From NCBI RefSeq assembly GCF_964188315.1, contig NC_135667.1, positions 11,532,001 to 11,596,000 of the forward strand: DNA of 64,000 bases, written 5' to 3'. The position numbers and the translations under genes were made by a program. Numbering within the stretch: the stretch's first letter is position 1; every line of letters starts with the position of its first letter. Positions 9,859-61,500 of this stretch are shown here, piece after piece. Origin of the DNA: Podarcis muralis. Lineage: Eukaryota. The notes beneath the pieces were generated by a model. The model had not been told where the DNA came from. It did no database searches and saw only the letters and a list, made by a program, of their open reading frames with translations.

Positions 9859-9885
9859 CCTCATCACAAATATCCTTCTACACAT

Positions 9886-12154: not shown

Positions 12155-12313
12155 TTATAAGTTGCTCCATATCAGCTGTTCTCTATTAATCAGTTCAGGC
12201 CTTATCATAATAATGTAGCATTAAGGGGAAAAGAGGCAAGCCAGCAAGCCAGTACTGGAAGCCAAGATGGAGAAAATCTCCACAGCCACCATGTATTTTC
12301 TTCTGGTGCTCAG
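12155..12313 (-). pseudogene. Remnant of E-type V2R exon-6 3' end downstream of gene B
   Basis: [51 protein letters not shown]; LLACLF is the E-type motif; followed by E-like 3' flank. Confidence 0.85.
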
Positions 12314-12522
12314 AGGTGCTACAGATATCATCCATAGTTTCCCCCCAGTTCATTTACATGTCATATGCAACTACACTGGATATCAAGAATATAAATGATA
12401 AGACAATCTCTTCTGTAATTTTCATCATTTCAGGTAACTTCCTTTCTTGAAAAAACCACAGGGAAAATACCATGCCAACAAGTCTAGAGTGTAAATACAG
12501 AAATGACAAACTATTCTGTTAT

Positions 12523-13424
12523 TTACATCTTTCTCCGTATCAGCTGCTCTCTGTTATTCAGCTCAGGCCTCACCACAATAATGTAGCATTTAGGGGAAAA
12601 GATGCAACCCAGCAGCCCAGCACTGGAAACCAAGATGGAGAAGATCTCCACAGCCACCATGTATTTTCCTCTGGTGCTCAAGTATGTGGGAATAAAGGAG
12701 AACCAAACACTGCAGAAGACCAGCATGCTGAAGGTGATGAACTTGGCTTCATTGAAGCTGTCAGGCAGCTTCCTGGCTAAGAAGGCCACAGTGAAGCTGA
12801 TAATGGCCAGGAAGCCCATGTAGCCTAAAACGCAATAGAACATGAGAACTGACCCCTCATTACATAAGAATATAATTTCTTCACTGCTTGAGTGCATGTC
12901 CACATCTGGGAATGGGGCAGAGGTTGCCAGCCAGAAGGCACAGATTCCTACTTGAATCACAGAGCAGGAAAGGACAATGGAGTAAGCCAGTTTTCTGCCT
13001 ACCCACTTCCTGATTGTGGAATCTGGCTTGGTAGCCATGAATGCCAAAACCACTGAAATAGTCTTGGCCAAGATGCTAGAGAGGGCCACAGAGAAGACAA
13101 TGCCAAAAGCCGTTTGTCGGAGTGGGCAGGTTGCCTTATTAGGCATTCCAATGAACATCAAGGAGCACAGGAAACACAAGAGGAGGGAGATGAGGAGAAT
13201 GTAAGTGAGGCTTCTGTTATTGGCTTTGACGATGGCAGTGTTCCGGTGCTTAATGAAAATGCCAAGTACCATAGCTGTGATCAGAGAGAATAAAAGTGCA
13301 GAAAAAGTTGAAATGATGGCCAAAGTTTCACCAAAGCCTAGCACGTTTGGTTTCTTGGGAATGCACTCATTCTGCTCTTCATTTGGATATTGATCCGGAG
13401 GACATCTGGCACAGGTTTCCAACT
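12523..13424 (-). CDS. V2R B exon 6 (7TM)
   Basis: 902 bp, (E)LETCARCP...IRRKM*. Confidence 0.95.
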
Positions 13425-16400
13425 CTGAAAAAAGGTTGCATGACAATTGGATACAATCCGGAATATGCTTAAGAGTGTGTTTTTTAAAACTCAGGAGACC
13501 CCTTACCATAGTGTTTCCCAAAAAGGAAAAGTTTCAAAACGTCTACTTCAAATGCTTGTGCCCTTGATGCTTTGAAAATAAAGTTATGCATGAAATCTTA
13601 CATTTCATATATGGAGAAACTATTATTTTGGTGGTCCACCTCCATTTTCTTAGAACCACAGATACTCAGAATGAAATCAGAGAAATATTATAGCTGAAAT
13701 CTTGGAAGCAAGACGGGTGGTTTTTATAGGATTTTAACACTGTCCCCAAAGAGCCTTGGTCTTAGAGAAAAAACCGCCACTTCTATTCCATCCTCCCTTC
13801 CCCAAAACTTTAGTGTTGTCTTCCAGGACAACATGTATGTACAGTGGTACCTCGGGTTAAGAACTTATTTCATTGTGGAGGTCCATTCTTAACCTGAAAC
13901 TGTTAACCTGAGGCACCACTCTAGCTAATGGGGCCCCCCACTGCCGCCACACCGCCACCATGTGATTTCTGTTCTCATCCTGAAGCAACATTCTTAATCC
14001 GAGGTACTATTTCTGAGTTAGCGGAGTCTGTAACCTGTAGTGTCTGTAACCTGAAGCGTCTGTAACCCAAGCTACCACTGTATGAAATTTATGTCGTTGC
14101 ATCAAAACAGACTTGAGGTGAAGCTACGCTAGTGGTTTATAAAGTTAAAATGCATTATTAAAATGTGACACCACAGCAGGGAGCCACCAGCAATGGGAAA
14201 CTGCATTAAACATTATGGAACATTATATTTAATAACATTTAAATGATCAATGTAGATACAGTGATGGAAAATCTTTATGTGACAGATAAAGTCACATTCT
14301 GATGGTTTACTCCATAGAAAGCTAAGATAATTTCTTCATAGTGGCAGTTTTTACTGAGACTGAAGGGAAATTAAGATACTATTTTTATTAAAGAATATAA
14401 ATTGAGTCCATACAGAGCAAACCCCATTGCCCATTTGTTCATAATTTACTAAAGTAACTTGTATATGCTAATATGGCACCTCTCACCCTTCTCATTTGAG
14501 AACATCCCATGAGGACATGGATCACAAGCATAACAACAGAACTTCTTCCCCTCCTTCTTTTTCTTCTCATAACCAGGAAGACAGTTGGCATTGCATAATG
14601 ATACGGGTGGCACCTATCCAAAGATATAGGAAGAGGTTAATATTAAGAAAATGTTTCAGGGATTCATCTATCATCAGGTGATCTATCATTAAATAGGAGG
14701 GCCAGAAATGTTAAATGTAGGATCCATACTCTCAATATATGCAAAAGAATCTCTTCATCCTTCATATAAAGGAAATGGGAATGGGATTTAGCAAATATGG
14801 GGTTAACAATCCTGACAGCAAAATGGATGTGGGCATTAAGACATTCCAAAAATGTTTATTAGTGTGAACCTGAAATATATTTTGCCTGCCTGCCCGCCTT
14901 CTATCTCTTGCAACTCCATCCACCAGCCTCTCTTTTCTTCCCTCCAAGCTAAGCTTTGCACTCTACTCACACTTACAACAGTGCCAACAGCTAACTAGGG
15001 ATGTGGAACTGCACCGCTGCTCTGATGGCCAACGCCAGTGGTGTCATGGGCCAGGAGTCGGCTTCACCTGCTGAGCAGCAGCCTAAAGGAGCAGAAGGCA
15101 AAGTGACTCCACCTGCTGCTGATCAGCCTTCTTGCTCCTGATGAGAACCAGCTGGCTCCAGTTTTTAAAGCAGGGTTTCCAGCCTCAGTCAGTTGCTGGA
15201 AACAACTTTTGTCATTCCTGAGCAGACCTTGCTGCTCATGGTCTTCTCGTGACCTTGCTTCTCGTGACCTTGGCCCCTTGACTTTCTTGATCCCCAGATT
15301 GTCTGACTATGTGAACTGTAATACTCCTGAGGTTAGGACTGGACTGAACTGTGTACAGTAATACCTCCTTGAACGTACACCCCGTTGAGCGTCCATTCTG
15401 CTGAATGTCTGCGGCAAAACCAGAATTACGGGAACGGGTTACCGCTTGCGAATGCGTGTGTGTGCAGAACAGCCCTTTGTCATGCATCCCTTTCACCGAG
15501 CATCTGGGACTCTGCCTCCAGTCCAGTACCCCCCTGAGATGTGGCTGGTTGGCTGGCTGCTCCCTCCTCTGAGGGAGCACAGGACCATGACAAACAGCTG
15601 GATTCCTTCCCTAGGCATGCCTTGCCCAGCAGCCCATGGAGTACTTGGATGGGCAGCCGGGTTTCAAGCCACTCTGAGCAAGGCATGATTTGGGGGGCTC
15701 CTCCTGGGTCTGTGGCAGGGGCCAACCTGACAAACACCTCCAAACACTCCTGCTTCTATCATTCCAGTTCAAAACTAGGGTCCCAAGTGGCATCTGAAAA
15801 ACTCATGAAGATTACAATGTTCATTCACAAAGATACAGCTAGCTTAGCATTCTATCTAATGCTACTAAGCAGAGAGCTGCCTTGAACAAACAAACATGTT
15901 GGACGACACTCTCTGATAGCCATTGGTCCTTCTTAGTTTGGCATGTCTTCCTTGAATGTTGCTCTTTTTGAAGAAATAGTTCATTTAACATTTACTAATA
16001 CAGTGTTACCTCAGGTTACAGACGCTTTAGGTTACCGACGCTTCAGGTTACAGACTCCACTAACCCAGAAATATTACCTTGGGTTAAAAACTTTGCTTCA
16101 GGATGAGAACAGAAATCGTGCAGCAGCAGCGGAGAGGCGGCAGCAGGAGGCCCCATTAGCTAAAGTGGTGCTTCAGGTTAAGAACAGTTTCAGGTTAAGA
16201 ATGGACCTCCAGAACAAAATAAGTTCTTAACCCGAGGTACCACTGTATAGTTCTTGAACTTAATATGTTAACCTTAGTTCTTGAACTTAACATGTTCCAG
16301 AAATCCGTTCGACTCCCAAAACTGTTTAAAAAACCAAGCTGTGGCTTCTGATTGGCTGTAGGAGCTTCCTGTACTCAAGTGGAAGCCGCGTCAGATGTTC

Positions 16401-19400
16401 GACATCCGAAAAACATTCGCAAACCGGAACACTGACTTCCAGGTTTGCGGAATTCGGGTGTCAATTTGTTCAGGAGCCAAGCCATTCGAGAACCAAGGTA
16501 CCACTGTGGAATTATTAGTAGCATTGTTATTTGTAGTGGGCAGTACTTCCCTTTTCACCTCAAGTGGCAAAACCAGACATGCCACCCCTATATGCATTGA
16601 TTTCCTTACCTGAGTGAAGACTCTGTGCCATTGGATTCCATCCCCATTAAGGGTGAGCTCTTTTCCAGGAGGGGCCTGAGGATCCAGCTTTCCGACTTTG
16701 ACCCTGACATAGGAATTATTTGGGAAAGTGACCAGGTTTGTAATATCAAATCCGCCTGCCAATTCTCCATGTTCATTTAATGTGATTTCATCGCCAACAC
16801 TGTTGTTGAATGAGATTCTGTGCAGAAATGAGTGCAGCTAGGTGGAAAGAGAATCAAAAGGTCCATGAAGTCTTGTAATAGCCTTACTAAGACAATTCAA
16901 TAGGTTTCCTGGGAGAATTTAAGTTCTTTTCCTCCAGGGGTCCCCCACTTCAGTTCCCAATGGAGGGGACCAAGATTTCAACAGCAGATCAAATAGAGAG
17001 GGAAATCATAAATCAGTGTAAACTCAACAGTCATGAGATAGAATAAATAGCAAGATGAAAGATTAAAATATTTTTTTATTAAAAGATGATCCAAAAATAA
17101 CTTCCTGAAGAGAAGCAGGTCTTTTTGTTTTAAGACAGTCTTTAAAAGAATCTCTCCCCCCACCCTTTTAAAATAATTCCAGTAGCACCATAAAGACCAA
17201 CTAAATATAAGCCTTTTAGGTATGAGCTTTCGTGTGCATACACACATCTTCAAATACTCTGAAGCTGAGGTCGCTACAACCTTATAACTGTTGATAACTG
17301 TTAATGATGGCAGTTGGTTCCACAGGGAAGGGCAAGGGATGTAAGGTGCTACTGGAATTATAAATATTTTTTTGGAAGTATTCTTTTAAAGACTGTCTTA
17401 AGAAAAAAAGACTCGATTCTCTTAAGGGAGTTCTTTTTGGATCATCTTTTAATAATTTTTTTAAAAAATCTTTCATCTTGTTATTTATTATGACTATGAC
17501 AGACCAACACGGCTACCTACCTGAATCTATAGTCATGAAATATGTATATAAAGGATGTAGACCTGTTTCCTTCAGAGCAGCCTTTGATAAGATTCAAGAT
17601 ATAGAAGGGATTTCAGATAATGGGCAGGAAAAGGGTCAGGTGCTCGTGTTCTTAAGACATTATATTAATGCAACATGGAAACATGTAGCTATAGCTCTCA
17701 TGTTAGGAGCTGGAGTTTCTTAGTTCAGGGCATCCATGCTTTCTGTATGTGTGTGGCTGTATGCTGCTCTGTATTAGTTACTGTGCCTTTAGTCAATGTA
17801 TGCCCTCTTCTGATAAGCAAGAAACCTCTTTTTGAGCAGTCTTGTGTGAGTATAGGTTCCTTGGTAATAGCGACTATTTAGGACACACAGTAGAGCAGTG
17901 TGCAATTGTTTCCCCATATGAAAGTCCTCACCTCTAAAGGGAATATGTTCTAGGTGGACATGTGAAGGGGCTCCCACAGCAATCAATGGCAGACTAGCTA
18001 CAACCTTTGCTACGCCTCTAGATGTACTGGACTCTTCCACTAGCCATCACATATCCAACACAAGTGGAGGGCATCAGCTCTTGGCTACTGTCACTGTGCT
18101 CTACACAGGACATTAGAAATGAGAGGGGCTTTATTGATGATATACAAAATGTCCCTAGAATTCATGTTCTGCTACAAGAAAGCAGCCTGCCACTGAAAAA
18201 AATCTTTGCTAATCTTGCTTAAATCATGGAAAGAAGAAGTAGGTAAACTGTTCCCAACCCAATCCCGACTAATACCCCTGTGTGGTGTTTGCCCTCCTAT
18301 GTGTGTGACATCATACTGGGTTCATAGGGAAACGGTTAACTAATTGTAAAATGACTAACGAATCGGAACCTAGGGGGCAGAGTTAACTGTGTATAAGGTT
18401 TAAGCACAGAGGTGGGGGTTTTTTGGAGAGAGAGTCAGAGTTGTGGAGAAGACAGTCTGGAGTTGGGGAGGCAGATAAGAAAAGTCTGTGGGTTGGGCTA
18501 GTCTGGTGGGAGAGAGTGAGAGAATTTGTTAAGAGGAGTCAGTCAAACAGTTGAGATAATCAGTCAGGAGGTATTAGGAAGGTATAAGCTGGTAAAGAAA
18601 CTGAAGTTAAGACACTGACAGGAATATTATCTGAGAAACCATAAACTTGTTAACGTTTGTAAAATAAACTTGTTTTTTTGGGTTCATTTTTAACAACTGA
18701 CTGGACTCAGTGTCTTATAGGCTGTGAGATTAACTCCACACAATGGATTAAAATGTGGTCTAAACCTCCCTTTAAAGCCATATCAACAAAAAGGAATTTC
18801 ACTCTGAAATTCACTTACAGATGGTACCTAACACCATGGAAACTAGTGCTAATACACCCAGGAATCTCACCAAGATACTCAAGAGGATGCAGCTCCACGG
18901 GCACATACCTCCATATATGGTGGGAATGTCCCCAAATCTAAACCTTCTGGACAGCAATCAAACAAGAAATATGCAAAATAACTAAGCAAGTATTAGAAGT
19001 CATCCCAGAACTGACCCTACTAAACATATTCCAAGATAATATTGCCCACTCACATGATAAGAAGCTTATAACCCACCTACTCTCAGCAGCCAGACACTGG
19101 AGAGACCTGTCATGAGTAAGCATGGACCAATGGTATCAAATAGTACGGGAAACAGCCTTATTAGAAAAATGAACCAATAAACTGAAACTGACATGGGGAC
19201 AAATAGAAGAAGACGCCTTCACCCCGTTATGGTTCCCCTTTATCACATACGTAGCCCGACAACACAATAACAAGAATCTGCCAACAGCATAGAAATCAAT
19301 CTGGCTAACCTGATTCAAAAATACCCCCCCCCCCACCTCACTACAGCTAACCAAAGACAAACAACCACACCCTCAACCACCCCCAACCTCACTCAACAAC

Positions 19401-30300: not shown

Positions 30301-33300
30301 TAGTAGCTTCCTGTACTCAAGTGGAAGCCGCGTCAGATGTTCGACATCCGAAAAACATTCGCAAACCGGAACACTGACTTCCAGGTTTGCGGAATTCGGG
30401 TGTCAATTTGTTCAGGAGCCAAGCCATTCGAGAACCAAGGTACCACTGTGGAATTATTAGTAGCATTGTTATTTGTAGTGGGCAGTACTTCCCTTTTCAC
30501 CTCAAGTGGCAAAACCAGACATGCCACCCCTATATGCATTGATTTCCTTACCTGAGTGAAGACTCTGTGCCATTGGATTCCATCCCCATTAAGGGTGAGC
30601 TCTTTTCCAGGAGGGGCCTGAGGATCCAGCTTTCCGACTTTGACCCTGACATAGGAATTATTTGGGAAAGTGACCAGGTTTGTAATATCAAATCCGCCTG
30701 CCAATTCTCCATGTTCATTTAATGTGATTTCATCGCCAACACTGTTGTTGAATGAGATTCTGTGCAGAAATGAGTGCAGCTAGGTGGAAAGAGAATCAAA
30801 AGGTCCATGAAGTCTTGTAATAGCCTTACTAAGACAATTCAATAGGTTTCCTGGGAGAATTTAAGTTCTTTTCATCGAGGGGTCCCCCACTTCAGTTCCC
30901 AATGGAGAGCACCCAGATTTCAACAGCAGATCAAATAGAGAGGGAAATCATAAATCAGTGTAAACTCAACAGCCATGGGATAGAATAAATAGCAAGATGA
31001 AAGATTAAAATATTTTTTTATTAAAAGATGATCCAAAAATAACTTCCTGAAGAGAATCAAGTCTTTTTGTTTTAAGACAGTCTTTAAAAGAATCTCCCCC
31101 CCCCTTTTAAAATAATTCCAGTAGCACCATAAAGACCAACTAAATATAAGCCTTTTAGGTATGAGCTTTCGTGTGCATACACACATCTTCAGATACTCTG
31201 AAGCTGAGGTCGCTACAACCTTATAACTGTTGATAACTGTTAATGATGGCAGTTGGTTCCACAGGGAAGGGCAAGGGATGTAAGGTGCTACTGGAATTAT
31301 AAATATTTTTTTGGAAGTATTCTTTTAAAGACTGTCTTAAGAAAAAAAGACTCGATTCTCTTAAGGGAGTTCTTTTTGGATCATCTTTTAATAATTTTTT
31401 TAAAAAATCTTTCATCTTGTTATTTATTATGACTATGACAGACCAACACGGCTACCTACCTGAATCTATAGTCATGAAATATGTATATAAAGGATGTAGA
31501 CCTGTTTCCTTCAGAGCAGCCTTTGATAAGATTCAAGCTGTAGAAGGGATTTCAGATAATGGGCAGAAAAAGAGTCAGGTCTCATGTTCTCAAGACATTA
31601 TATTACTGCAACATGGAAACATGTAGCTGTAGCCCTCATGTTAGGAGCTTGAGTTTATTAGTTCAGGGTATCCATGATTTCTGTATGTGTGTAGTTGAAT
31701 GCTGCTCTGTATTAGTTACTGCACATTTAGTCAATGTATGCGCTCTTCTGATAACCAAGAAAACTCTTTTTGAGCAGTCTTGTGTGAGTATATGTTCCTT
31801 GGTAATAGGGACTACTTGGGACACACAGTAGAGCAGTGTGCAATTTTTCCCCATATGAAAGGCCTCACCTCTAAAGGGAATATGTTCTAGGTGGACATGT
31901 GAAGGGGCTCTCACAGCAATCAATGGCAGACTAGCTACAACCTTTGCTACGCCTCTAGATGTACTGGACTCTTCCACTAGCCATCACATATCCAACACAA
32001 GTGGAGGGCATCAGCTCTTGGCTACAGCATGTCACACCACTGTGCTCTACACTGGACATAAGATATGAGAGGGGCTGTATTGAAGATATACAAAATGTCC
32101 CTAGAATTCATGTTCTGCTATAAGAAAGCAGCCTGCCACTGAAAAAAATCTTTGCTAATCTTGCTTAAATCATGGAAAGAAGAAGTAGGTAAACTGCTCC
32201 CAACCCAATCCCGACTAATACCCCTGTGTGGCGTTTGCCCTCCTATGTGTGTGACATCATACTGGGTTCATAGGGAAAGGGTTAACTAATTGTAAAATGA
32301 CTAACGGATCGGAACCTAGGGGGCAGAGTTAACTGTGTATAAGGTTTAAGCACAGAGGTGGGGTTTTCTTGGAGAGAGAGTCAGAGTAGTGGAGAAGACA
32401 GTCTGGAGTTGGGGAGGCAGATAAGAAAAGTCTGTGGGTTGGGCTAGTCTGGTGGGAGAGAGTGAGAGAATTTGTTAAGAGGAGTCAGTCAAACAGTTGA
32501 GATAATCAGTCAGGAGGTATTAGGAAGGTATAAGCTGGTAAAGAAACTAAAGTTAAGACACTGACAGGAATATTATCTGAGAAACCATAAACTTGTTAAC
32601 GTTTGTAAAATAAACTTGTTTTTTTGGGTTCATTTTTAACAACTGACTGGACTCAGTGTCTTATAGGCTGTGAGATTAACGCCACACAATGGACTAAAAT
32701 GTGGTCTAAACCTCCCTTTAAAGCCATATCAACAAAAAGGAATTTCACTCTGAAATTCACTTACAGATGGTACCTAACACCATGGAAACTAGCGCTAATA
32801 CACCCAGGAATCTCACCAAGATACTCAAGAGGATGCACCTCCACGGGCACATACCTCCATATATGGTGGGAATGTCCCCAAATCCAAACCTTCTGGACAG
32901 CAATCAAACAAGAAATATGCAAAATAACTAAGCAAGTATTAGAAGTCATCCCAAAAGTAACCCCACTAAACCTATTCCAAGATAATATTGCCCACTCACA
33001 TGATAAGAAGCTTATAACCCACCTACTCTCAGCAGCCAGACACTGGAGAGACCTGTCATGAGTAAGCATGGACCAATGGTATCAAATAGTATGGGAAACA
33101 GTCTTATTAAAAAAACGAACCAATAAACTGAAACATGGGGACAAATAGAAGAAGACGCCTTAATCCGATATGGTTCCCCTTTATCACATGCATAGCTCGA
33201 CATCACAATAACAAGAATCTGCCAACAGCATAGAAATCAATCTGGCTAACCTGATTCAAAAATACATCCACCCTCCCCAACCCCCACCCCTACCTCACTA

Positions 33301-40655: not shown

Positions 40656-41557
40656 TTACATCTTTCTCCGTATCAGCTGCTCTCTCTTATTCAGCTCAGG
40701 CCTCACCACAATAATGTAGCATTTAGGGGAAAAGATGCAACCCAGCAGCCCAGCACTAGAAGCCAAGATGGAGAAGATCTCCACAGCCACCATGTATTTT
40801 CCTCTGGTGCTCAAGTATGTGGGAATAAAGGAGAACCAAACACTGCAGAAGACCAGCATGCTGAAGGTGATGAACTTGGCTTCATTGAAGCTGTCAGGCA
40901 GCTTCCTGGCTAAGAAGGCCACAGTGAAGCTGATAATGGCCAGGAAGCCCATGTAGCCCAAAACACCATAGAACATGAGAGCTGACCCTTCATTACATAA
41001 GAATATAATTTCTTCACTCATTGAGTGCATGTCCACATCTGGGAATGGGGGAGTGGTTGCCAACCAGAAGGCACAGATTCCGACTTGAATCAAAGAGCAG
41101 GAAAGGACAATGGAGTAAGCCAGTTCTTTGCCTACCCACTTCCTGATTGTGGATCCTGGCTTGGTAGCCATGAATGCCAAAACCACTGAAATAGTCTTGG
41201 CCAAGATGCTAGAGAGGGCCACAGAGAAGACAATGCCAAAAGCCGTTTGTCGGAGTGGGCAGGTTGCCTTATTAGGCATTCCAATGAACATCAAGGAGCA
41301 CAGGAAACACAAGAGGAGGGAGATGAGGAGAATGTAAGTGAGGCTTCTGTTATTGGCTTTGACAATGGCAGTGTTCCAGTGCTTAATGAAAAGGCCAAGT
41401 ACCATAGCTGTGATCAGGGAGAATAAAAGTGCAGAGAAAGTTGAAATCATGGCCAAAGTTTCACCAAAGCCTAAGACGTTTGGTTTCTTGGGAATGCACT
41501 CATTCTGCTCTTGATTTGGATATTGATGCGGAGGACATCTGGCACAGGTTTCCAATC
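40656..41557 (-). CDS. V2R D exon 6 (7TM)
   Basis: 902 bp including stop. Confidence 0.95.
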
Positions 41558-44500
41558 CTGAAAAAAGGTTGCATGACAATTGGAAACAATCCAGAACATG
41601 CTGAAGAGTGGTTTTTTTTTTAAAATTCCCCTTAGCATGTACCAACTTTATGTCTTGTCGCATCAAAACAGACTTGGGGTGGTGCTACAGTAGTGGTTAA
41701 TAACAATAAAATGCATTATTAAAATGTGTACAACCCATAAAATGTGAAGAAGAGGAAGAAGAATATTTAAGTCCACAATGTGCCTTGTTCTTAGAGAAAA
41801 GACCACCACTTCTATTCCAGCCTCCCTTCTCCAAACCTTTAGTGTCTTCCAGGACAGTACAAATTTTATATTATTTATTAAAATGTGGCAGCACAGAAGT
41901 GATTCACTGGCAATAGGAGATTGCATTAAACATTATAAAGCGTTACATGCAATAATGTTGGAAAATCTTTACATTATGCATATAGTCACATTCTCATGTT
42001 ATACACCCTAGAAATAACTTGTATATGCTCTCACCCTTCTCATTTGAGAACATCCCATGCGGACATGGATCACAATCATAACAACAAAACTTCTTGCCCT
42101 CCTTCTTTTTCTTCTCATAACCAGGACGGCAGTTGGCATTACATAATGAAAGGGGTGGTACCTATCCAAAGAGACACAAAGAGGTGAATATTCAGAAAAT
42201 GTTTCAGGGATTCATCTAACATAAGGTGATCTATCAGTAAATAGGAGGGCCAGAAATGTTAAATGTAGGATCCACACTCTCAATATATTCAAATCTCTTC
42301 ATCCTTCATATAAAGGAATTGGGAATGGAATTTAGCAAATATTGGGTTAACAATCCTGAAAGGAATTGGCATTAAAACATTCCAAAAATGTTTATTAGTG
42401 TGAACTTGAAAGTCAATATTCCAATGGTACTTTACTTTATACAGAATTTATTTATTTATGTAGGCCGAAACTGGCACTCTTGGATATATAACAGAATTAA
42501 GGCAGATCCAATACATATATTTTAAAGTTGTAAATTAATAATTCCTTTATGGACAGAAGTACTGAAGAGTTCTCCTTCAGAAGTCAACTGTGGTTAAACT
42601 TTACCTAGTGCTCTTTTTCTTTACAATATATATTCTCAAAGTAGGAGCAATCATATGGCCACTTTTAGTTCTAGTAAAACTGAGATCTGCTTGTGAAGAT
42701 ATTGATGCCTTCTATGTGGAGGTGTACCGAGGCTTCCTTGTCCCCTTGGCATGGAGCTATTTTGGCATCCCCACCATCCCTTGCACTATTGGCAAGGAGA
42801 TATCAGTGCTTCCAAAGTCGGAAGAGACCATGGAACAGGAACTTCTAAAGTTTGCTTTTCATCACCTTTTGTGCTCCTCCTGGGCCATCAGGGTTGGGTC
42901 TGCTCTGCTCCTCCCCCTGCCTTCCTTTGTCTGCCTGCCTGCCTGCCTGCCTCCGTCGCTTTGCATACCACCTGCTCGCCTTATATCTATTACAACTCCA
43001 TCCACCAGCCTCTCTTCTCTTCCCTCCAAGCTAAGCTTTGCACTCTACTCACACTTACAACAGTGCCATCAGATAACTAGGATGTGGAACTGCACCGCTG
43101 CTCCGATGGCCAATGTGGTGTCATGGGCCAGGAGTCAGCTTCACCTACCAAGCAGTAGCCTGAAGGAGCAGAAGGCGAAGTGACTCCACCTGCTGCTGAT
43201 CAGCTTTCTTGCTCCTGATGAGAACCAGCTGGCTCCAGCTTTTTAAAGCAGGGTTTCCAGCCTCAGTCAGTCGCTGTAAACAACATTTGTCATCCCTGAT
43301 CAGACCTTGCTGCTTCTTGTTTCTCGTGACCTTTGACCCCTGGCTTTCTTGACCCCCAGATTGTCTGACTATATGAACTGAGATACTCCAGACCTTACGA
43401 CTGGACTGGAGCGTGTATATGGACTCTACCTCCAAGCAAGTACCCCTCTGAGATTTGGCTGGTTGACTGGCTTCTCCCTCTTGGAGCTCAGCCATGGCTG
43501 GCAACACACGACTATGACAAGCACCTGGATTCCTCCACCGAGGTACTGAGAGGAGCCTGAATCCTTTGTCCAGCAACCCATGGAGTACATGGCTGGGCAG
43601 CCGGGCTCCAAGCCACTCTGAGCAAGGCATGATTTGGGGGGCTCCTCCTTGGTCTGTGGCAGGGGCCAACCTGACAAACACTTCCATACACCCCTGCTTC
43701 TATCGTTCCAATTCAACACTAGAATCTTAAGCGGCATCAGTGTGAACCTGAAAGATTCCAGTGTTTATGCATAATGATATGGTTAGATTGGCATTCTGTC
43801 TAATGCCACTATGTAGAGAGCTGCCTTTAACAAACAAGCATTTTGTACAACACTCTCTGATAGTCATTGGTCCTTCTTGGTTTGATATGTCTTCTTTGCA
43901 TGTTGCTCTTTTTGGAGCAATGGTTCATTTTATTTTTTACAAAAGAACTATTAGTAGCAGCGTTATTAGTAGTGGCAGCACTTCCCTTTTCACCTCAAGT
44001 GGCAAAACATGTCTGTTGGATAGTTGCAATACCCAATATCTGGTTATGGGCCCAGCATTGAGTATATGACTGCCCATTTTTGGACTCTGAGAAAGGTTTG
44101 AAGTCTACTCCTCCTGTTGGTGTGGTACTGGAAGATTTCAAGGATGACTGACCATGTTACAGAAGCCAAGAAAGCTCTTACGTTTCCAGAGCTGACAAAT
44201 GAGAATTATAGTTCATGGTCGTTTGGTGTGGAGGCACTTTTGACCTCTCGTGATATGTGGCAGTATGTGACTGAGGACCCTGCTAACCCCATGAATGATC
44301 CTTGGGCGATAGGAGATGCAAAAGCCAGGGCAATAATTAATTTGGCTGTCAGATACCAACAAGTGGTTTACATAAGGAATAAGAAAACTGCCAAGCAAAC
44401 GTGGGAAGGTCTTGCAGCAGAACATCTTAGGAAGGAGTGTGTGTCTTATTAATGTTTTTCAAGCAGCTTTACCAGACAAAGCTGCAGCCTGGCGGTGACT

Positions 44501-47500
44501 TGGCGGCACACTTCAGGTGTTTGGAGGAAAAACGTGATGAATTGATTCGAAGGGACATGGTGATACCCGATATTCAGTATGAATTTATCGTTCTTTGTTC
44601 CCTTAATGAAGACTTTGATGGTCTAGCTGGCCAGATATCTACCATTCCACCAGCACAATTAACAGTGGAAGGGGTAACGGCAAGATTAATGGGCGAGTTA
44701 GACCGAAGGGAGGCTTGTGCGATAAGAACGGCTGGTTCCAGAAATAATGAGGATAGCCGTATGCGGACTTGCGGTGACACGACTGCATTAAAAGTTGCCA
44801 AGCGTTTTTCCTGCAATAAACAAGGACATTTTGCAAAGGATTGCAGATCCAAAAGAAACCACACAAGGTACTCCCAAATCTGCTTCAGCTCAACAATCAC
44901 AGTCGTCACCCCAGCAGCAGCCGCCATCATATTGTAAAGGCAGATACGAGCCACGAGCTTTTCACACAGGTGCCAAGTGGAATTTTTTTGGTTTTTGACT
45001 CTGGAGCTTTGAGGTATATTTGCAATGATCAGAGTTTTTGTTAATAGCTTTTGTTAATAGATGGATCACAACATGGACATTCTATTTATCATTTGGATAT
45101 AAAAACTGCATATTGGTTTGCAGATTTGCTTTTAAACCATGCAAAGATATTTTTGCATCTCTTCAGTGATTCCATCTGTGTGGTCTACTCTGCACGCACT
45201 CTGCAACAAGTTCCAAATGACCAATAATGCCACCCCTTTGTGCAGTGATGTCCTTACCCGAGTGAAGGCTCTGTGCCACTGGATTCCATCCTCATTAAGG
45301 GTGAGCTCTTTTCCAGGAGGGGCCTGAGGATCCAGCCTTCCGACTTTGACCTTGACATAGGAAGTATTTGGGAAAGTGACCAGGTTTGTAATATCAAATC
45401 CACCTGCTAATTCTCCATGTTCATTTAATGTGATTTCATCCCCAGCACCGTTGTTGAATGAGATTCTGTGCAGAAATGAGTGCAGCTAGGTGGAAAGAGA
45501 ATCAAAAGGTCTATGAAGTGTTGTGAAAGTCTTACTAAGATAATTCAATAGTTTTCCGGGAAGAATATAAGCTCTTTTCCTCCATGGGTTCCCCACTTCA
45601 GTTCCCAATGGAGAGCACCGAAATTTCGACAGCAGATCAAATAGAGAGGGAAATTGTGAATCAGTGTAAATTCAACAGTCATGGGATACACACATAAAGG
45701 CTGTAAATCTGTGTGTTTCAGAGCAGCCTTTGTTAAGATTCAAGCTGTAGAAGGGATTTGAGATGATGGGCAAGGACTTCCGGGTTAGCGCGGACAGCTA
45801 ATGGCGGATTCCCTCCGAGCTCCGGAGGGAATCGGCTCCGCTGGAGACGGGTCCTGCCGCGACGGCGACGCGGAGACCCTCAAAAACCGCAGGCGCGGAT
45901 GCCTGCGGACCTGGTGACTCGGTGGGCACCTTAAACGCCCCCTCTGACCCACGAAGAGCCTTTTTAAAGGCTTTGGAGAGGGTACGGAGAGCGGCGCGGT
46001 GCTGAGAGTAGACCGCTACCCCAGTGGAGCGAAGCCGCGTGCCATGGCTGAAGAGCGCTGACTTTTTTCCCTGAATTCGGCTGGAAAAGAAGCAACCCGT
46101 GAGTAAAGTGGAATTGGGACTTTAAAATATTTATTTCTGAATTCGGTACAACCGGGGTGTGTGTTAAAGGGAAGTCCGCACCCCCCCCCCCCATTGCAGA
46201 CGATCTAAAGCAACAATAGAAGAACTAAGCTGGAGAGCCTACCCTTTGCGGGGTGAGTTAAAAAAGACATTAACTTCCAAGATTTGGTAAAAAGAAATTT
46301 GAGCTGGAGTGAAAGAGTGGAATCTTAGAAGCTTTCTTTTTGTTGTGTACAACCCCCCTCCCGGGCCCGGGAGCGTCCTGTGTTTGAGCGTATGGAAGAG
46401 GAATACGGAGTTTGACAGCTGTCAAAAGCTGTCAAACGGACAATTTAAAGCTGAAAAAATTGTTATTTAAGATCCCTCTAGATTAAAATGAGTTACAATT
46501 GAACTAAAATCGTTGGAAACAAAGAAACAATAACGAGTCAGAGGTTTGTTGGAGAAAGATTATTAAGTAACCAGATTCCCTCTAGGGGGAATTCTGTGAT
46601 ATTACAATGGCTGCGGATGGAAAGGTACTAGCGGAAATCGAAAGAATGTTTTACTTGGTGGGAATCTTACAAGAGCAGAGTCTGGCTATGAATAAACAAC
46701 TCATGACCTTGACCTCTGGAATAAGCAGCTCTGCTGAATGTATTGAGGACTTGAATGAGAAAGAATCTGCAGCTGGATTAGAAATGATATCTCAAGAAGT
46801 GGAGGAGACTAAACAAGGAAAAGAGAAAGCAAAGATGGAAAGTACCAACCAGAAGTTTACACTAGTGGAGTACAAGCAAGGAGACTTTGGGATCACATTG
46901 ATTACAAATCTGCGAAAGATGCAAAAGACGAAGGAGGAGGCCCCTGGAGTATATGGAATACAGGTATTTAAAACAAAGAAGAAATTTGATTGGGGCCCCC
47001 ACTCTGACTCTGAAGATGCATGGCCTGTGGAACTTTTGCAGCAGTTGTTCCTAAATATCCTTGTGGGAAGAGAACCTGGTTTGATGGGGATAGAACTCCT
47101 TCGAGATTCGACGACCAACATAAAGGACTACCAACAAGACCGGCGGAGAGGGACTGAAAGAAACTTGAAAGCCTCGGACGTGAGGAATCCAGGCTAGAAT
47201 GGTTATTTTGGACACGTATTGGGGAAGGGACGAAAACCGGGGATGGGAGGGAGGGAAGAATAGAACTTTAAAAACATTTATGACTTTTGGGTTTAGTTAA
47301 TATGACTTTTATCTAATACAAAATGGGAAATCGATGGAAGGGAATTTGAGTCCAACTTAGGAAAAAAAACTTATTTTTTCATAAAAGATGTAATATTAAG
47401 ATGGTAAAGAGGAGAAATAATAATTTGCTGACACAATTATGGGAATTGGGATGCATGAAGGGGGGTGGGGGGAAGTCAAGGAACAAGGTTAAGAAAGTAG

Positions 47501-50500
47501 GATTTTTTGAAACTATATATGTTCTTGTCTTTGTCTTTTTTGTGTTGGAAAATTAATAAAAATTATTTTTTTTAAAAAAAAAGAGATGATGGGCAAGAAA
47601 AGGGTCAGGTGCTCGTGTTCTCAAGACATTATATTACTGCAACATGGAAACATGTAGCTGTAGCCCTTATGTTAGGCGCTTGAGTTTCTTAGTTCAGGGC
47701 ATCCATGATTTCTGTTTGTGTGTAGCTGTATGCTGCTCTGTATTAGTTACTGTGCATTTAGTCAATGTAAGCCCTCTTCTGATAACCAAGAAGCCTCTTT
47801 TTGAGCAGTCTTGTGTTAGTATATGTTCCTTGGTAATAGGGACTATTTAGGACACACAGTAGAGCAGTGTGCAATTTTCCCCCATATGAAAGTCCTCACC
47901 TCTAAAGGGAATATCTTCTAGGTGAACATGTGAAGGGGCTCTCACAGCAAACAATGGCAAACACACTACAACTTTTGCCATGCCTCTAGATGTACTGGAC
48001 TCTTCCACTAGACAAGACATATCCAACACAAGTGGAGGGCATCAGCTCTTGGCTACAGCATGTCACACCACTGTGCTCTACACAGGACATAAGAAATGAG
48101 AGGGGCTTTATTGAAGATAGACAAAATGTCCCCAGAATTCATGTTCTTCTATAAGAAAGTCAGCCTGCCACTGAAAAAGAATCTTTGCTGATCATGCTAA
48201 AAGCATGGAAAGAAGAAGTAGGTAAACTGTCCCCAACCCCATCCCTACTAATACCCCTGGCACACCACCCACTATTCCACCGTGCAGAACAAAATCTCTG
48301 GATAAAAACATGGCAAGCCAAAGGCTTATACAAAAACAGCAAACCCTTATCAACACAAGAAATACAAGACAAACTAGGGGCTACCCAGATGTCCTGGCTA
48401 TCCCATCACATGCCCTCCTAAACAACGCAGTAGTAAAATATTCAGCAACTAGGCCCTTGAAAACTTTCGAAAACCTCCTCCTAACATCAAAGGGACACAG
48501 CAAATGGATGGTACCCACAATATACAAAATACTGCTCCAAAATCTCATATCCCCCTTGTCATAATAAAAAAAAAATTGGGCGGATGCCATAAGACATTAG
48601 ATTAACACCACCCAATGGACTAAAATGTGGTCTAAACCTCCCTTTAAAGCCATATCAACAAAAAGGAAAGAACTCACTCTGACACTCACTTACAGATGGT
48701 ACCTAACACCATGGAAACTAGCGCTAATACACCCAGGAACCTCACCAAGATACTCAAGAGGATGCACCTCCACAGGCACATACCTCCATATATGGTGGGA
48801 ATGTCCCCAAATCCAACCCTTCTGGACAGCAATCATATAAGAAATACGCAAAATAACTAAGCAAGTATTAGAAGTCACCCCAGAACTGACCTCACTAAAC
48901 ATATTCCAAGATAATAAAGACCACTCACATGATAAAGAAATATCATAGCCAGACACTGGAGAGACCTGTCAGGAGTAAGCATGGACCAATGGTATCAAAT
49001 AGTATGGGAAACAGCCTTATTAGAAAAATGAACCAATAAACTGAAACTGACAAGGGGACAAATAGAAGAAGACGCCTTTACACCGATATGGTTCCCCGTT
49101 ATCACATACACAGCTCAACAACACAATAACAAGAATCTGCCGACAGCATACAAATCAATCTGGCTAAGCTGATTCAAAAATACACCCCCACCCTCCCCCA
49201 CCTCACTACAGCTAACCAAAGACAAACAACCACACCCTAAGCCACCCCAACCTCTCTCAACACCAAGCAAATATAACAAGTGAATAGTCGGAGAACCCAT
49301 ACAAGTAACGCTGACCCAAAACCCCAAACATACACTAAGTAGAAGAATAGAAGAATAACCACACGACCTATTCCCCCATCCCCTCTTTTCTTCCTAACAA
49401 GCCCCCTCTGTTCTATCCCCTTTGTTTCCCCTTTGTTTATACCAATTCATGAACCAAGAACTTATACATTGACCACTAATAATGAAACATACCGGTATGT
49501 TGCAGATATTACTCCACATTTATTATTCTTGTGATATACAAAAGACATGAGAAAACTTGGTATACCTATTTGTATAACTTTATCCTTGTTTATAAACCCC
49601 CCCCCAAGTTATTTTTTTAAAAAAATTGCTTTGATGTCAGACAGGGAAAGTTCAAGCAAATATTTTCTAGAATCATAGGATCATATAATTAGAGTTGGAG
49701 GGGAGCACAATAAAATTAGTTAATGTTAATTTTGATGTATTAAGATTTATGATTTTATTTAATATAAATAATTGACAACCCATATCGTACATCAATGGAG
49801 TGCACAACACTGAGCATGTTATATAGTAAAGACTTTGTAACAAGAAACGCTACCTGCCAAGGCTCTACATTCTGAGGAAAGAGTCTGTTTCTGTCCTTTG
49901 TCCTTTTGCAGATGGCTTCAGATGAGCACCTAATACGTAAGGCATGTGCCAGAGCATAGACAGCATTATAGATACTGTAGCTGTGGCCAGTCATGCTCAT
50001 TTCAAAATATGGTGTAGGGAGGTTCTCCAGCAATTCCTCTCCAGTACATGTACCCAAAATGCCTGCCATTGCAGTGGCGTTTGAAAGTGAACAACCAAAC
50101 GATTGTTCCCAGAAATGCTTGATAAAACCATCTTCGTCTTGTCCAGAAGGCTTTACATCCTGCAGAAAGTTTGAGAAGTCTTGAATCTCCTTGGAGTGAA
50201 TCGTAATGGAGATAGCACCTTGGAGCATTTGTATATTAATGTCAATAACTTTACTGAAAATTTGATTTGATATGAAATCTATTTGGGCTGTTGTAATCCA
50301 TACTTTCCAATCAGGTTCTTTCCCCGCAAATTGCTGAAGAATTAGCCGAATCATAATCTTTGGAATTATAACACCTGTAAGCCATATAATCGATGTACTT
50401 TCTCCATATATAACAACTGCATTTGCTTTGCTTGTAATGAAATTTTGCGAGAAAAGCTTTGATTGATCCACTATATGAAATATGTTACCACTGAAATGCA

Positions 50501-53500
50501 AATAGTAATCTGTTCTTTCTGTGAACGCTGAACATATTCCATTCTTGAAAAGCATTGGTTCAATGGTCTGCAAGAACTGATCTCCAGCTTCATTAGCTGG
50601 AGTCATGAGCCCAACCCATTTCCATCTGAAATGCAGAAGTAGCTGGATAATTCCCTTGTACTGAAGATCTTCATTGGGGACCATGCGATAAAAGGAAGCG
50701 AATTTGATGTGATCATTTATGGCCGGTTCAAAAGAACCATATGAAATCTGAGAAAGAAAAAAGCCAAACTTTTCCATGTGGAAACAAGAATTCACAACAC
50801 ACTCATTTATCTAATATAAATCCTATGCATTCCATCTTTTCTAATCTTAGAGAAAGGGCTACCCTCCGATTTACATAGAAAAACGCACAAAACAAACAAT
50901 CTTGCTCATTTATTTATGTAGATATTAATTTCTATTATTGTGGTGTCATCACAGTCGCATACATGTACACATGGATTGTGTCAAAATCAGGAGAGCATTT
51001 ATCCCTGCTCGTTTCCACATACTGCTTGGATACATCAACATAACTTGATTGTGGAAATGGAGGGAGACAAACCATTGATCATGTTCTTCTGGTCTATAAC
51101 CTTTAAAGCAATTGTAGAGAGACTTTGATGGTTTATGTACTAAGAACTTTCATGGGAGTTCTCCTGTAGATTTCCTGGACATAATACTTTTTATTCTTTT
51201 GTGAACAACAATAAACCATATCCTATATAATGAATCAAAATACTAGCAAAAATTAAGGCAATTAAAATGAAGTTCAGTAATGTAGCAGAGCAACACAAAA
51301 ATGGTACCACTATTTTTCTCACCCCAAGTGCCAGAAAAATAACAAGAAAAGTGCTTTTCATTAGCCTCTGAAAGAGGACAGTGCTGAATAACATCACACT
51401 TCCACAAGGCGGGAATTTCATGATTCCTAGGGAAACACCATTCTTGTCCTGAGTCATTTATGCCTCTGCAAGTGATTATTAGCAGCATGAATTGGGATTG
51501 GTACTTTTCAGACAGTTAGGACAATGCTTGCAGGATTGCCCAATCCTCCACTAAATATATTAAACACATCTTTGGGAACACGGCTCTCTCATAAAAGTTG
51601 GTTTATGCACATACTAACGTCCTCAAATATATCGATATATGGCAACCATTTTCCTTTTTTGACTTGATGCTTATGAATCAACAGCTTCCTAGTTGAAGGA
51701 GTGTAGAGTGAACTACAGAATGACATATCTATATTATGTACCTGTGGAATTTTGTAAAGACCTAAGACATCTGCCATGGATGAGGAGGTGTCAGAGCTAA
51801 GTCCCCCAATGACTCCTACTATTTTTTTCTGATTTCCGCATATGTAGTTGGGGACAAAGTGATGTGATTTAAAGAGAAGATCCAGAGTGTTTTGGTAGGT
51901 CATCCTTGAATCAGAACAGCTATCATAGATGTGGAATCCAAGCGTGGCATTGGGCAAGATCTTGGGATTCCCATTGATCTCATCAACAGCAAACACCAAG
52001 GCGAGGATGTGTTGGTAGAACTTTCTAATCACCCTACAAATAAAGTGTGTTACTATTTTATGGGGAATAAAGCAGTGCACAACATCGAGATGTCAGAGAT
52101 TAAACTGCCTCTGTTAAATATTCATGTAAATATTGAAATTGCTTTGTGTGTTTAGAGTTAATGTTTGGATGTCTCCTCCATCCAAGTTAGATTTTTTAGT
52201 TGTCTGAACACATAGGTTGAGAAGAGATCTTCACTTATGAAGCTTCAGGTTTTTTAACCATGTTGCTCTTTATCACTAGAAACAAGAACTGTGCCACATG
52301 GCTATGCTACAGTTATTGAAATCAGTTCGATATCCCTTTGTCAGTACATAGCTGTCCCTAGCAATAGAAATGGTATGATATTAAACAAAGGAATTGGCAG
52401 CTGCCATTTTGAATATGAAGAATGCCCAGTGATGAGCTAGCAGTGATGATAGTAAAAGGGCTCTCCTCCCATTATTACTAAGCGTATTTAAAATGTATCC
52501 CTGAATGTTTGCAATGTACTTTAGACATGCCTTCCATTTTGAACCATCCTTCACTAATGCAGCTCAAGCTGGGCTTCATAGTTCTCCTCTCTCCCCTTGT
52601 CTCCCACAAAAGTGCCTAAGTTGTAGGTGACCCAGAAAATGGAGATTTGAACCCAAAGGTTGCCATGATGTATTACTGTGGGCAGGAGGATCAATGGCTA
52701 GAGAGCAAGTGATGGTGATCTGAAACTGCACCAGCTCAAACACAGTTGAAGTTTCATATCTTCATCTTTACCAGCACTGCGTCCACAACCAGCTATCTGG
52801 AAGAGCTTGAATATTCTTTTGTCATCTGGCCAAGACAGCATTTCTCTAATAAAGTTAGCAGCCTGCTGCTATGTCTTTGGAAATACTTTAGAGATGGAAT
52901 CAGTTTCAGACAGAATTGCATGATACAATTGGATCTTGTCAAATGGTATGCAGTGCACTCTCTGTTCCATTTTTGCTGGAACAGTTTTGATTATTGTGGC
53001 CAGAGGATGTAGTGAATGTGCTTGAAGAAATGAAGTTGTCAAACTGACCCCTTGACCCTTGCCTGTCTTGGCTTTTTAAATGGAGCTTTATAGGATTGAC
53101 TGGCAGTGGCAGACTTGGGTACTATGACACCTATTGCAAGGCTGAAAATTTGCACCCACGTAGACCTTGCATTGCCTTCCCTTAGGAAGGAATCACAAGG
53201 CTCTGGCAGGGTCCTAGAATCCTTCCATCTAATTCTCAAAGCTGAAAAATTGCTAACTAGGCTTTGTGAAGGAGGCAGGAGGAGTCCAGAACCTAGTCAG
53301 ATACTCATGGTTCTCTACTCAAGCCCAGTGCCTGGCTTACCCGGCTTTGAGGCAGTGCTCCCATGGCTCTGTATCTGATGTGTGTACACTGCTCGCACAA
53401 CCCTAATTCTGCCTCTTTGACTGGGGAAGTTCAGTGAGTTTTCTATGCTTCACTGGATAATAGACACATACTGTCCAACTTGAAGCAGATTATGGTGTGT

Positions 53501-58587: not shown

Positions 58588-61500
58588 TAAAAAGTCCACT
58601 TACTATATTCATCTGATAGCAGTGGTTGTGGCCTGGCATGGCTGCAGAAAATCTGGGGTGGTGGATATCCCTCAGCAAGTGGTCAGCTGACGGCAGCAGT
58701 ATGACTGATGGCCATGTGGGAAGTTGTGAAAAGACCACAAAATTTGAATTTGTTCTGCCCAATAGCAAGCAAGTTTAGCAGGTGTGACTATGGGATTACT
58801 GCCATTTGATTCATGAATTTCACTAGGTGCTATTTTGATGTGACTCTAGATGGTGGGATTTGCATTAAAAAAACAAAACACCTTTCTACATACAGTGGTG
58901 CCTCGCAAGACGAAATTAATTCGTTCCGCGAGTTTTGTCGTCTTGCGATTTTTTTCGTCTTGCGAAGCACGGTGTCGGAAAAGTTTTGGAAAAGCTTCAA
59001 AAATCACCAAAGTCTTCAAAAACCTCAAAAAAGGCTACCACACCGCGTGCTATGAGTTGCTCCTTGAAGTCAAGTCGCAACTGTATTAACGGTGTTAAGA
59101 AAAAGGAAACAAACTTGCAAGACGTTTCCGTCTTGTGAAGCAAGCCCATAGGGAAAATCGTCTTGCGAAGCAGCTAAAAAAACAAAAAAAAAAAACCCTT
59201 TCGTCTTGCGAGTTTTCCGTCTTGCGAGGCATTCGTCTTGCGAGGTACCACTGTAGAATACAATAAAAAAGCAATCTACATAAAGGAAAAGGGGGGGGGG
59301 AGAGAAAGAAAAGAGAAAGAGAAAGAGAAATAGAAAGAGGAAGAGGAAGAGAAAGAGGAGGGGGATATAAAGCCCTCTCCCAAATGTAGATCTTAACCCT
59401 TGTCTCTCATAAAAGGGGGTGGACCTTTCCAGCTGTAACCTAGGAGCTTCCTTTTTTTCTCCCAGGCTCCCACCTTGGCAGATCTTCCATCCCGTGCCTC
59501 TCATACAATGTATTTCACCTGCATCTATCTCCTTCCTGGGTGTACCAGAGTAGAGAACATCCAAAACAACAAAAACAAACAAACAAACAAAACACAACCC
59601 ACAAGCAAATGCAAAGTATAGTGGTAGCTCAGGTTACATACGCTTCAGGTTACAGACTCTGCTAAGCCAGAAATAGTACCTCGTGTTAAGAACTTTGCTT
59701 CAGGATGAGAACAGAAATCGTGCTCCGGCAGCGCGGCAGCAGCGGGAGGCCCAATTAGCTAAAGTGGTGCTTCAGGTTAAGAACAGTTTCAGGTTAAGAA
59801 CGGACCTCCGGAATGAATTAAGCTCTTAACCCAAGGTACCACTGTAGATTAACCAAAAAAGGAAAAGAGAAAAGGCTGAACGGGGGAAAAAGATTTTTTT
59901 AAAAATAGAAAAGAGAGACATAGAAATTAAATAAATATTACTTCCAATTCTCTGTCTGTCAATTATATATTAAAAAGTTAATCAAAATATTCAAAGTGTT
60001 CACTCCAGGATGGTATATAGCTGTATTCCAGGGTAATATCCAGCTGTTCCTTGTTCTACTAGGTGATGTTTCCCCAGTCCTCAATCCCATGAGCCTCAAG
60101 TTCATTCATTATCTATGTTGAATTTTCAACGTAGATAAAATTTTCATCTTATTTTTGAAAACTTTCTTTTCTCCTCCAGTGTATAGCAAACTTAATTATG
60201 CATTAAGTGAAGACCTGCTTTCTTCCCTCCCTTACACCCCATCTTTATGGAAAACTATGAATGTTGCCATCTGAGAGCCTGTGCAGTTATTTTCTCACCT
60301 GAGTGAAGCCACTATGCCATTTGATTCTGTCTGCATTAATGGTGAGCTCTTTGCCAGGAGGGGCCTGAGGATCCAGCCTCCCCACTTTGACCCTGACATA
60401 TGATCCATTTCGGAAAGTGACCAAGTTTGTAATATCAAAGCCAGCTGCTAACTCTCCATATTCATTTAATGTGATTTCATCACCAGCACTGTTGTTGAAC
60501 GAGATTCTCTGCAGGAATGATTGGACCTATGTGAAAAGAGAACCACAAGGTCTACAAAGTCAGGGAATGGGCAGGTGTGGGGGACTCTCTGGTCTTGAAT
60601 GCAGTAACTGTGCCTCTAAAGGACCAGGTGTGCAGTCTGGGGGTCATTTTGGACTGACAGCTATCCATGGAGGCACAGGTTATCTCATGCTTGGACTATT
60701 GCATGTGGTGCTGCCTTTGAAGATGACTCGGAAACTACAATTAATCCAGAATGCGGCAGCTAGACTGGTGACTGGGAGTGGCTGCTGGGACCATATAACA
60801 CCGGTCCTAAAGGATCTTTATTGGCTCCCAGTGCATTTCCGAGCACAATTCAAAGTGTTGGTGCTGACCTTTAAAGCCCTAAATGGCCACGGCCCATTAT
60901 ACCTGAAGGAGCATCTCCACCCCCATTGTTCCTCCTTCAAGGGTCTTCTGCTGGTTCCCTCACTGCGAGAAGTGAAGTTACAGGGAACTAGGCAGAGGGA
61001 CTTCTTGGTAGTGGTGCCCTTCCTGTGGAACACCCTGCCTTCAGATATCAAGAAAATAAACAGCTAACTGACTTTTAGAAGACATCTGAAGGCAGCCCTG
61101 TATTGGAAAATTATTAATGTTTTATGTTCTAGTATGTTTTGATATATGCTGTGAGCCACCCAGAGTGGTTAGGGAAACCCAGCCAGATGTTGTGTTTTGT
61201 TGTTGTTGTTAATTGGAGGGTGTGTGTGGCTTTCATTTCCTTCATTTCTGGAATCTCTGAATTTTGCTAGATCTCTGTATCATGTGTGCTGGAATTACCA
61301 AGGAAACCAGAAATTTTCATGGACTCTCCACCAGATTTTGAGAAACTTCAGAAAGCTACAAGGGTCATTTCAGGCAGTTTGATTTGCACTCCACTTGGCT
61401 AATCTGTGCTGTTAACCGTAGGTAAGAGGAATGCCTATGTAATCTAAAGTCTTTTTATTATTATAAGAACTTTTCTAATTCCAATCTCTGATATAACAAA

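Follow-up and report, generated by a model that had tools for sequence, protein, structure and literature searches.

A young insertion in a V2R gene of Podarcis muralis as a probable member of an L1-mobilised, protein-coding retroposon family of lizards

HAL1 elements are L1 derivatives that encode only the ORF1 protein (ORF1p) and arose several times in mammals, according to a published account (PMC5753468, citing Smit 1999 and Bao and Jurka 2010). Here we describe a unit of similar design in the lizard Podarcis muralis, a 1,808-bp insert at 45775-47582 (+) of a 64,000-nucleotide stretch of genomic DNA (assembly GCF_964188315.1, contig NC_135667.1, forward-strand positions 11,532,001 to 11,596,000), which was analysed at its full length, is called the window throughout and to which all coordinates refer. 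We take this insert, with a probability of roughly 80%, to be a young copy, of full or nearly full length, that belongs to a multi-copy family of non-autonomous poly(A) retroposons of lacertid-type lizards, which is mobilised by L1 and codes for a protein. Like HAL1, the element would be a non-autonomous, L1-mobilised unit of about 2 kb with a single open reading frame (ORF) between a leader and a polyadenylated 3' end and with no ORF2, and its family appears to have propagated with the ORF kept open. Unlike HAL1, it resides in a squamate host, its ORF of about 200 codons has no detectable Transposase_22 RRM or CTD, and its descent from L1 is hypothetical.

Three other systems offer partial parallels. 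The processed pseudogenes and retrogenes made by L1 share with the lizard element the target-site duplication (TSD), the poly(A), the intronless mRNA-like unit and the use of L1 proteins in trans (PMC3747384, PMC2666806), but a processed pseudogene is a single copy made from a host mRNA, whereas the lizard element belongs to a multi-copy family that propagates itself, has several transcribed subfamilies and bears a 5' head present hundreds to thousands of times. The gag-only non-LTR (long terminal repeat) element HeT-A of Drosophila (PMC5537684) also has a structural protein of its own and no reverse transcriptase, and needs a partner element; however, HeT-A targets telomeres and its Gag bears zinc knuckles, whereas the lizard element shows dispersed insertion and an apparent orphan protein. 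Hominoid SVA and LAVA are CpG-rich, non-autonomous, L1-mobilised elements transcribed by RNA polymerase II (Pol II) and carrying a TSD and poly(A) (PMC3287187), a set of properties which the lizard element would share. SVA is non-coding with a variable-number tandem repeat, whereas our element is protein-coding and without a tandem array, and an SVA-like composite was discarded. No squamate family of such design is described in the literature searched, the coverage of which was partial and did not include Repbase and Dfam.

The insertion and its family in the genome

The window consists of five tandem units (A to E, about 12-15 kb each), each with a minus-strand gene for a V2R-type receptor. 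Pfam scanning of the window ORFs located the 7tm_3 exon (40659-41666, -) and the ANF_receptor exon (49758-50795, -) of V2R gene D, and the insert, the limits of which were set from the TSD, the empty paralogous sites and the contig depth, lies between the two, being thus intronic and antisense to the gene. The 15-mer GAGATGATGGGCAAG occurs immediately on its 5' side (45760-45774) and again on its 3' side (47583-47597), with 15 of 15 positions identical, while units A, B and C have it only once at their paralogous sites. A query made of the joined D flanks minus the insert aligned unbroken in B (17531-18029) and C (31470-31966) with about 90% identity, and also in A, running through the insertion point in all three; the empty target sites are at 5249-5263 in A, 17614-17628 in B and 31553-31567 in C. 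A perfect 15-bp TSD and an empty site in A, B and C had been reported in an earlier note on this DNA, and both observations were confirmed. Unit E matches the left flank of D over the first 145 nt only and then diverges (60560-61100), the target region being missing or replaced there, and blastn returned no second copy of the element elsewhere in the window. The insertion in gene D postdates the tandem duplication.

The genomic abundance of the element was evaluated on contigs of two same-species DNA runs (X1 and X4, from two studies and two individuals) aligned to 44600-48800. Summed word-depth, which is not an exact copy number and is to be read as orders of magnitude, was about 8-18 in the unique flank, 70-780 over the element body and 2,600-29,400 over the first two bins (45728-46009). 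The body thus reaches about 10-80 times the depth of the flank, the first 100-250 nt hundreds to thousands of times that depth and the 5' head 15-100 times that of the remaining element, with a drop to the unique level at both element ends. These values correspond to tens of copies of the body at 90% identity or more, and to hundreds to thousands of copies of the head, an excess that would be expected if the head were shared with a far commoner element such as L1. The 1,110 pieces from X1 were distributed over three identity classes (173 at 99% or above, 294 at 95-99% and 643 at 90-95%), and this spread from 90% to more than 99% indicates a family of several ages. Over the ORF, contigs of 443-448 nt with 0-1 differences occur at about 5 times the unique depth, which indicates several almost identical copies and points to a recent burst. 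Both ends of the ORF, which are the conserved termini of the protein, are local peaks of DNA depth, which is consistent with many copies of higher divergence still matching there. At several positions, ORF codons 7, 121 and 186 among them, the insert itself carries a letter other than the one most common in the family. The depth and the graded identities, found in two individuals, thus identify the element as a multi-copy repeat family and not a single retrocopy, in agreement with the family membership previously proposed.

As for the junctions, one X4 contig spans 45485-45802 with one difference and extends 28 nt into the element past the 5' junction, the length adopted for a bridging contig being 31 nt. 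Contigs skipping from 45772 to about 47795 were considered as a possible empty allele and rejected, as they carry 16-18 other letters at the joint and derive from the paralogous empty units; the contigs of the two DNA runs gave no sign of insertion polymorphism.

The element begins GACTTCCGGGTT, and its second base opens a ACTTCCGG motif (45776-45783, +) which we assume to be an ETS/GABP-type core and a candidate internal promoter element. The same ACTTCCGGGTTG start was found in the consensus of the loose ends of relatives in two further runs, X15 (probable RNA) and X23 (bulk RNA-seq, raw reads, about 12% of the run sampled). The 5' head contains a hairpin or palindrome with a 14-bp stem (45804-45836, +; inverted repeat, 93% complementary), and the first 186 nt of the element fold better than shuffled sequences (z = -4.5). 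Reads and contigs of relatives match 45800-45838 and diverge on either side, with a peak of depth at this position. The head (45775-46175, +) has a GC content of 52-64% and a CpG observed/expected ratio of about 1.05; what remains of the 832-nt leader (45775-46606, +), which contains five short upstream ORFs, has a ratio of 0.4-0.9, and the entire window one of 0.24. A CpG-rich 5' region of about 800 bp had been claimed earlier, and this holds for the first 400 bp or so, while the remainder is lower though still raised over the window.

The ORF scan located the intact 196-aa ORF at 46607-47197 (+), with the start context ACAATGG providing A at -3 and G at +4, thus confirming a single ORF in a strong Kozak context. 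The 385-nt 3' untranslated region (UTR; 47198-47582, +) ends with AATAAA (47555-47560), T8 (47566-47573) and A9 (47574-47582), the last directly abutting the 3' TSD. Such a tail had been noticed before and likened to an L1 tail at about position 2490: its three parts are present, but the likeness amounts to A/T low complexity, since blastn gave nothing significant. No L1 coding remains were found near 2490, and Pfam detected no ORF of 80 aa or more for reverse transcriptase, endonuclease or ORF1 anywhere in the window, so that nothing marks the tail at 2490 as that of an L1. A tail motif of an A-run, a T-run and an A-run occurs twice in the 3' UTR (47363-47386 and 47555-47578, 192 nt apart, 79% identity); the doubling could be the trace of an earlier poly(A)-like end inside the element, or no more than low complexity.

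Other classes of mobile element were also considered. ARAGORN found no tRNA-like sequence and Rfam gave no match at the gathering threshold or at E up to 1, so no Pol III head was detected; the element is moreover 1.8 kb long and coding, and a short interspersed element (SINE) was excluded. Tandem Repeats Finder detected no tandem array within the element, but only a 2-copy 10-mer at 46417-46436. An LTR or DNA element was rejected on the lack of terminal repeats besides the TSD.

The 196-residue protein and its possible relationship to L1 ORF1

The element has no other sense-strand ORF of 80 aa or more, and neither the 196-aa ORF nor its N- and C-terminal pieces matched a Pfam domain at E up to 10, which agrees with the reverse transcriptase and endonuclease having been reported as missing. 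A word-index protein search returned 8 relatives of 129-201 aa with 50-72% identity, and a profile search of 1.84 billion representative proteins of any length returned 10 clusters, all of 129-215 aa, none of its matches at E up to 0.001 falling outside the family. When the family profile was used in a second word search, which covered proteins of up to 343 aa, nothing was added at E up to 10 besides one 154-aa fragment. About 20 full-length relatives were collected (171-215 aa, 28-72% identity). In an alignment of 15 sequences, whose identity to the ORF of the insert falls from 72% to 28% over lengths of 171-215 aa, start and stop are aligned and conservation is concentrated at the two ends, with values of 0.66 for residues 1-36, 0.79 for residues 178-196 and 0.37-0.55 for the middle. 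The basic C-terminus reads RASDVRNPG in the family consensus and KASDVRNPG in the insert. As about 200 codons stay open at 28-72% identity, the ORF is probably under selection.

In Podarcis lilfordi at least 8 near-identical "hypothetical predicted proteins" lie on at least 6 chromosome-sized records, and some of the entries are N-truncated, cut short or frameshifted, as would be expected of dispersed copies. The frameshifted tail of one of these entries, P0008, aligns with the translated start of the 3' UTR of the insert, and the homology therefore extends past the ORF. The remaining members come from Logan contigs whose length, 0.9-1.9 kb, is close to that of the element.

The AlphaFold2 model built on the 15-sequence alignment had a predicted local distance difference test (pLDDT) score of 47 and was confident only for a long N-terminal helix (residues 3-50). 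The ESM Atlas matches, at 0.79-0.88, were all fungal hypothetical proteins and did not reach a meaningful level, and sequence searches of the PDB with the ORF and the family profile gave chance-level matches only. The element had been credited with its own protein of unknown function; the preservation of a full-length ORF with conserved termini speaks for such a protein.

Where this protein comes from is the point on which the best surviving alternative differs. The element might be a true half-L1, that is a lizard L1 minus ORF2, whose ORF is a shrunken ORF1 that kept the coiled-coil start and the extreme C-terminus and lost the RRM; the mechanism of mobilisation would be the same and only the origin of the protein would differ. 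The architecture agrees with this, as a long CpG-rich leader, an ORF and a short 3' UTR with poly(A) are what such an element should have. The predicted N-terminal helix may resemble a coiled-coil start, and the 5' head is far commoner than the body, as if shared with another repeat. The LLRD near the C-terminal end of the ORF also recalls what we take to be an MLRDF near the end of mammalian ORF1p. The protein searches point the other way. Vertebrate L1 ORF1p is normally recognised as Pfam Transposase_22, comprising coiled coil, RRM and CTD (PMC5203782), but no Transposase_22, trimer or CTD match was obtained for the ORF of the insert, for its N- and C-terminal pieces or for the 15 family members (Pfam, E up to 1-10). 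At E up to 10, none of the PDB chains matched by the family profile was an L1 ORF1p, and the word search up to 343 aa contained no such match at the same threshold. Among the 1.84 billion representatives, no ORF1p and no longer protein sharing either conserved end was found, at a sensitivity limit of about 40 bits. Another 55 window ORFs, each at least 80 aa long, were compared with Pfam in search of an L1, and copia-type gag pieces were all that was recovered. We therefore regard a half-L1 as possible, with odds that stay well short of even.

The feature that defines HAL1, an ORF that is the L1 ORF1p, was thus not detected at the sensitivity of the Pfam, PDB, profile and word searches. These results agree with the earlier note, which had seen no L1-ORF1 RRM motif, and give no support to a truncated ORF1 of an internally deleted L1, which that note had named as the finding that would overturn its interpretation; its term "HAL1-like" is apt for the architecture and not for the protein. 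The 196-aa protein appears to be an orphan at the level of detectable sequence. It might then have been captured, or acquired independently, by an L1 parasite and kept under selection across squamates as a cis-acting factor that packages RNA or recruits the L1 ORF2 protein (ORF2p), a proposal that in this full form we hold to be unlikely.

Transcription, proposed mobilisation and alternatives

Relatives of the insert are expressed in P. muralis. In the X23 sample, 198 RNA reads were aligned, of which 174 were at 90-95% identity and 14 at 99% or above, 92% of them running into unlike sequence; the subfamily of the insert itself is therefore weakly represented in this RNA. The loose ends are colinear with the leader (at about 45838, 46153, 46285 and 46564) and with the ORF start, where one RNA relative reads MAVEGKLL and an X15 contig KIQAELDRMF, as compared with MAADGKVL in the insert. 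As these diverged ends are colinear and carry the ORF in frame, other subfamilies of the same architecture are expressed in the species. X15 gave near-identical contigs over 45909-47469 with zero depth on the immediate flanks, and its head-to-body depth ratio of 2-4 is much flatter than that of the DNA runs, a profile that fits unit-length transcripts.

The 15-bp TSD, the AATAAA with its A-tail and the target, which reads TTT/GAGATGATGGGCAAG/AAAAG with a pyrimidine run followed by a purine run at the nick (TTT/GAGA), argue for an L1-type insertion with a staggered cut and poly(A) priming. We propose that Pol II would transcribe the element from an internal CpG-rich promoter in the 5' head, with the ETS-type ACTTCCGG at +2 and the conserved hairpin, so that the element would carry its promoter to each new site. 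The polyadenylated RNA would then be copied into DNA by the ORF2p of an autonomous L1 acting in trans. The protein of the element, with its long N-terminal helix and basic C-terminus, may bind its own RNA in cis and do a job like that of ORF1p, which would account for the conservation of the ORF; we give this last step a chance only a little under even. Pol II transcripts examined in a cell assay were found to behave like processed pseudogenes and to require ORF1p besides ORF2p (PMC2666806), and this makes a cis-acting role of the protein plausible. The copies of mixed ages, the colinear transcribed relatives, the conserved ORF and the lack of matches to reverse transcriptase, endonuclease or ORF1 sustain the earlier suggestion of a non-autonomous family unit with its own protein and an L1-type insertion.

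The same mRNA-like layout, with its Kozak ATG and AATAAA, could also be produced by a processed retrocopy of a lineage-specific host gene, whose mRNA was copied by L1 and was dead on arrival. The homologue-bearing contigs of about 1-1.9 kb look like transcripts, and the few biallelic sites within three Logan clusters are what alleles of one locus might show. Yet a dead copy would not be expected to be one of tens that share 90% identity or more, vary in age and include several nearly identical members, nor would its 5' head be present hundreds to thousands of times. Moreover, several diverged subfamilies with open ORFs, distinguished by the starts given above, are transcribed in the same species, and the near-identical copies of P. 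lilfordi are dispersed, so we consider a retrocopy very improbable. Even less probable is a copy or protein that serves the host, for example as a domesticated gene or an L1 inhibitor: the ORF is conserved at deep divergence and in human cells truncated ORF1 proteins are able to suppress L1 when acting in trans (PMC5605252), but the insert is a new intronic antisense insertion absent from the paralogues, departs from the family majority even within the ORF, and belongs to a set of dispersed, recently multiplied copies typical of a mobile element.

Several observations weigh against an L1-mobilised, protein-coding family as described above. The target TTT/GAGA, with only two of four A, loosely matches the TT/AAAA of the poly(A)-bearing strand, the poly(A) is only 9 nt long, and it is from insertion hallmarks that we deduce both the reliance on L1 ORF2p and any ends held in common with L1. 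The leader contains five upstream ATGs, one of them in a strong context (46044, a 5-codon upstream ORF). The structural model is poor beyond the N-terminal helix and lends no support to RNA binding or oligomerisation. The database ORFs were ascertained as open or called, which weakens the argument from ORF conservation. Members of each of the three Logan clusters are separated by just 3-5 sites, which occur in every combination; these variants may be alleles of one locus in other species or a chimeric assembly of several copies, and the homologue may be low-copy there. Finally, RNA reads of relatives run at least about 50 nt upstream of the first base of the insert: 23 X23 reads extend upstream of 45800 (median 74 nt), with GATGG before GACTTCCGGG. 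The insert may thus be 5'-truncated by about 50 nt, or these reads may come from read-through at one expressed locus. We consider the insert probably complete at its 5' end.

Surroundings of the insertion and significance of the family

The intron of gene D contains other repeats. About 0.8 kb upstream of the insert, 43761-44934 (+) holds copia-type gag ORFs (Retrotran_gag_2, gag_3, DUF4219) with a CCHC zinc knuckle; they represent part of an LTR retrotransposon that lies, like the insert, in this intron of unit D. About 0.6 kb downstream, a high-copy repeat covers 48125-48800, with a DNA contig depth of 450-13,800 as compared with about 10 for unique sequence, and is also present in the RNA reads. 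Just upstream of the empty site, about 490 bp of additional sequence is present in units B (17041-17530) and C (30983-31469) but in neither D nor A, and a hammerhead motif lies within the added segment of unit C (31159-31196). Elsewhere in the window, unit A has an ATG-started ORF of 285 aa (2903-3760, -) that has no Pfam match, and the sequence at 1700-1925, starting ACAGTGGTACCTCGGGTTAAGAA, resembles what we presume to be a squamate SINE.

At the level of the locus the meaning of the insert is small. We found no indication of an effect on V2R gene D; the young intronic insertion distinguishes this gene from its tandem paralogues and could serve as a marker for dating or genotyping the V2R array. 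As an object in itself the insert is an unremarkable young copy, though the family to which it belongs is of interest.

To our knowledge, the protein-coding L1 parasites described so far are the mammalian HAL1 elements, all with a recognisable ORF1p. A squamate family of HAL1 architecture, with a protein not recognisable as ORF1p, still transcribed and recently inserted, would show that this strategy arose outside mammals, and would offer a natural test of what an ORF1-type function requires. If the protein is truly an orphan, the family would represent a second, unrelated solution to the job of ORF1p and a system in which to define the minimal needs of a Pol II transcript that hijacks the L1 ORF2p.

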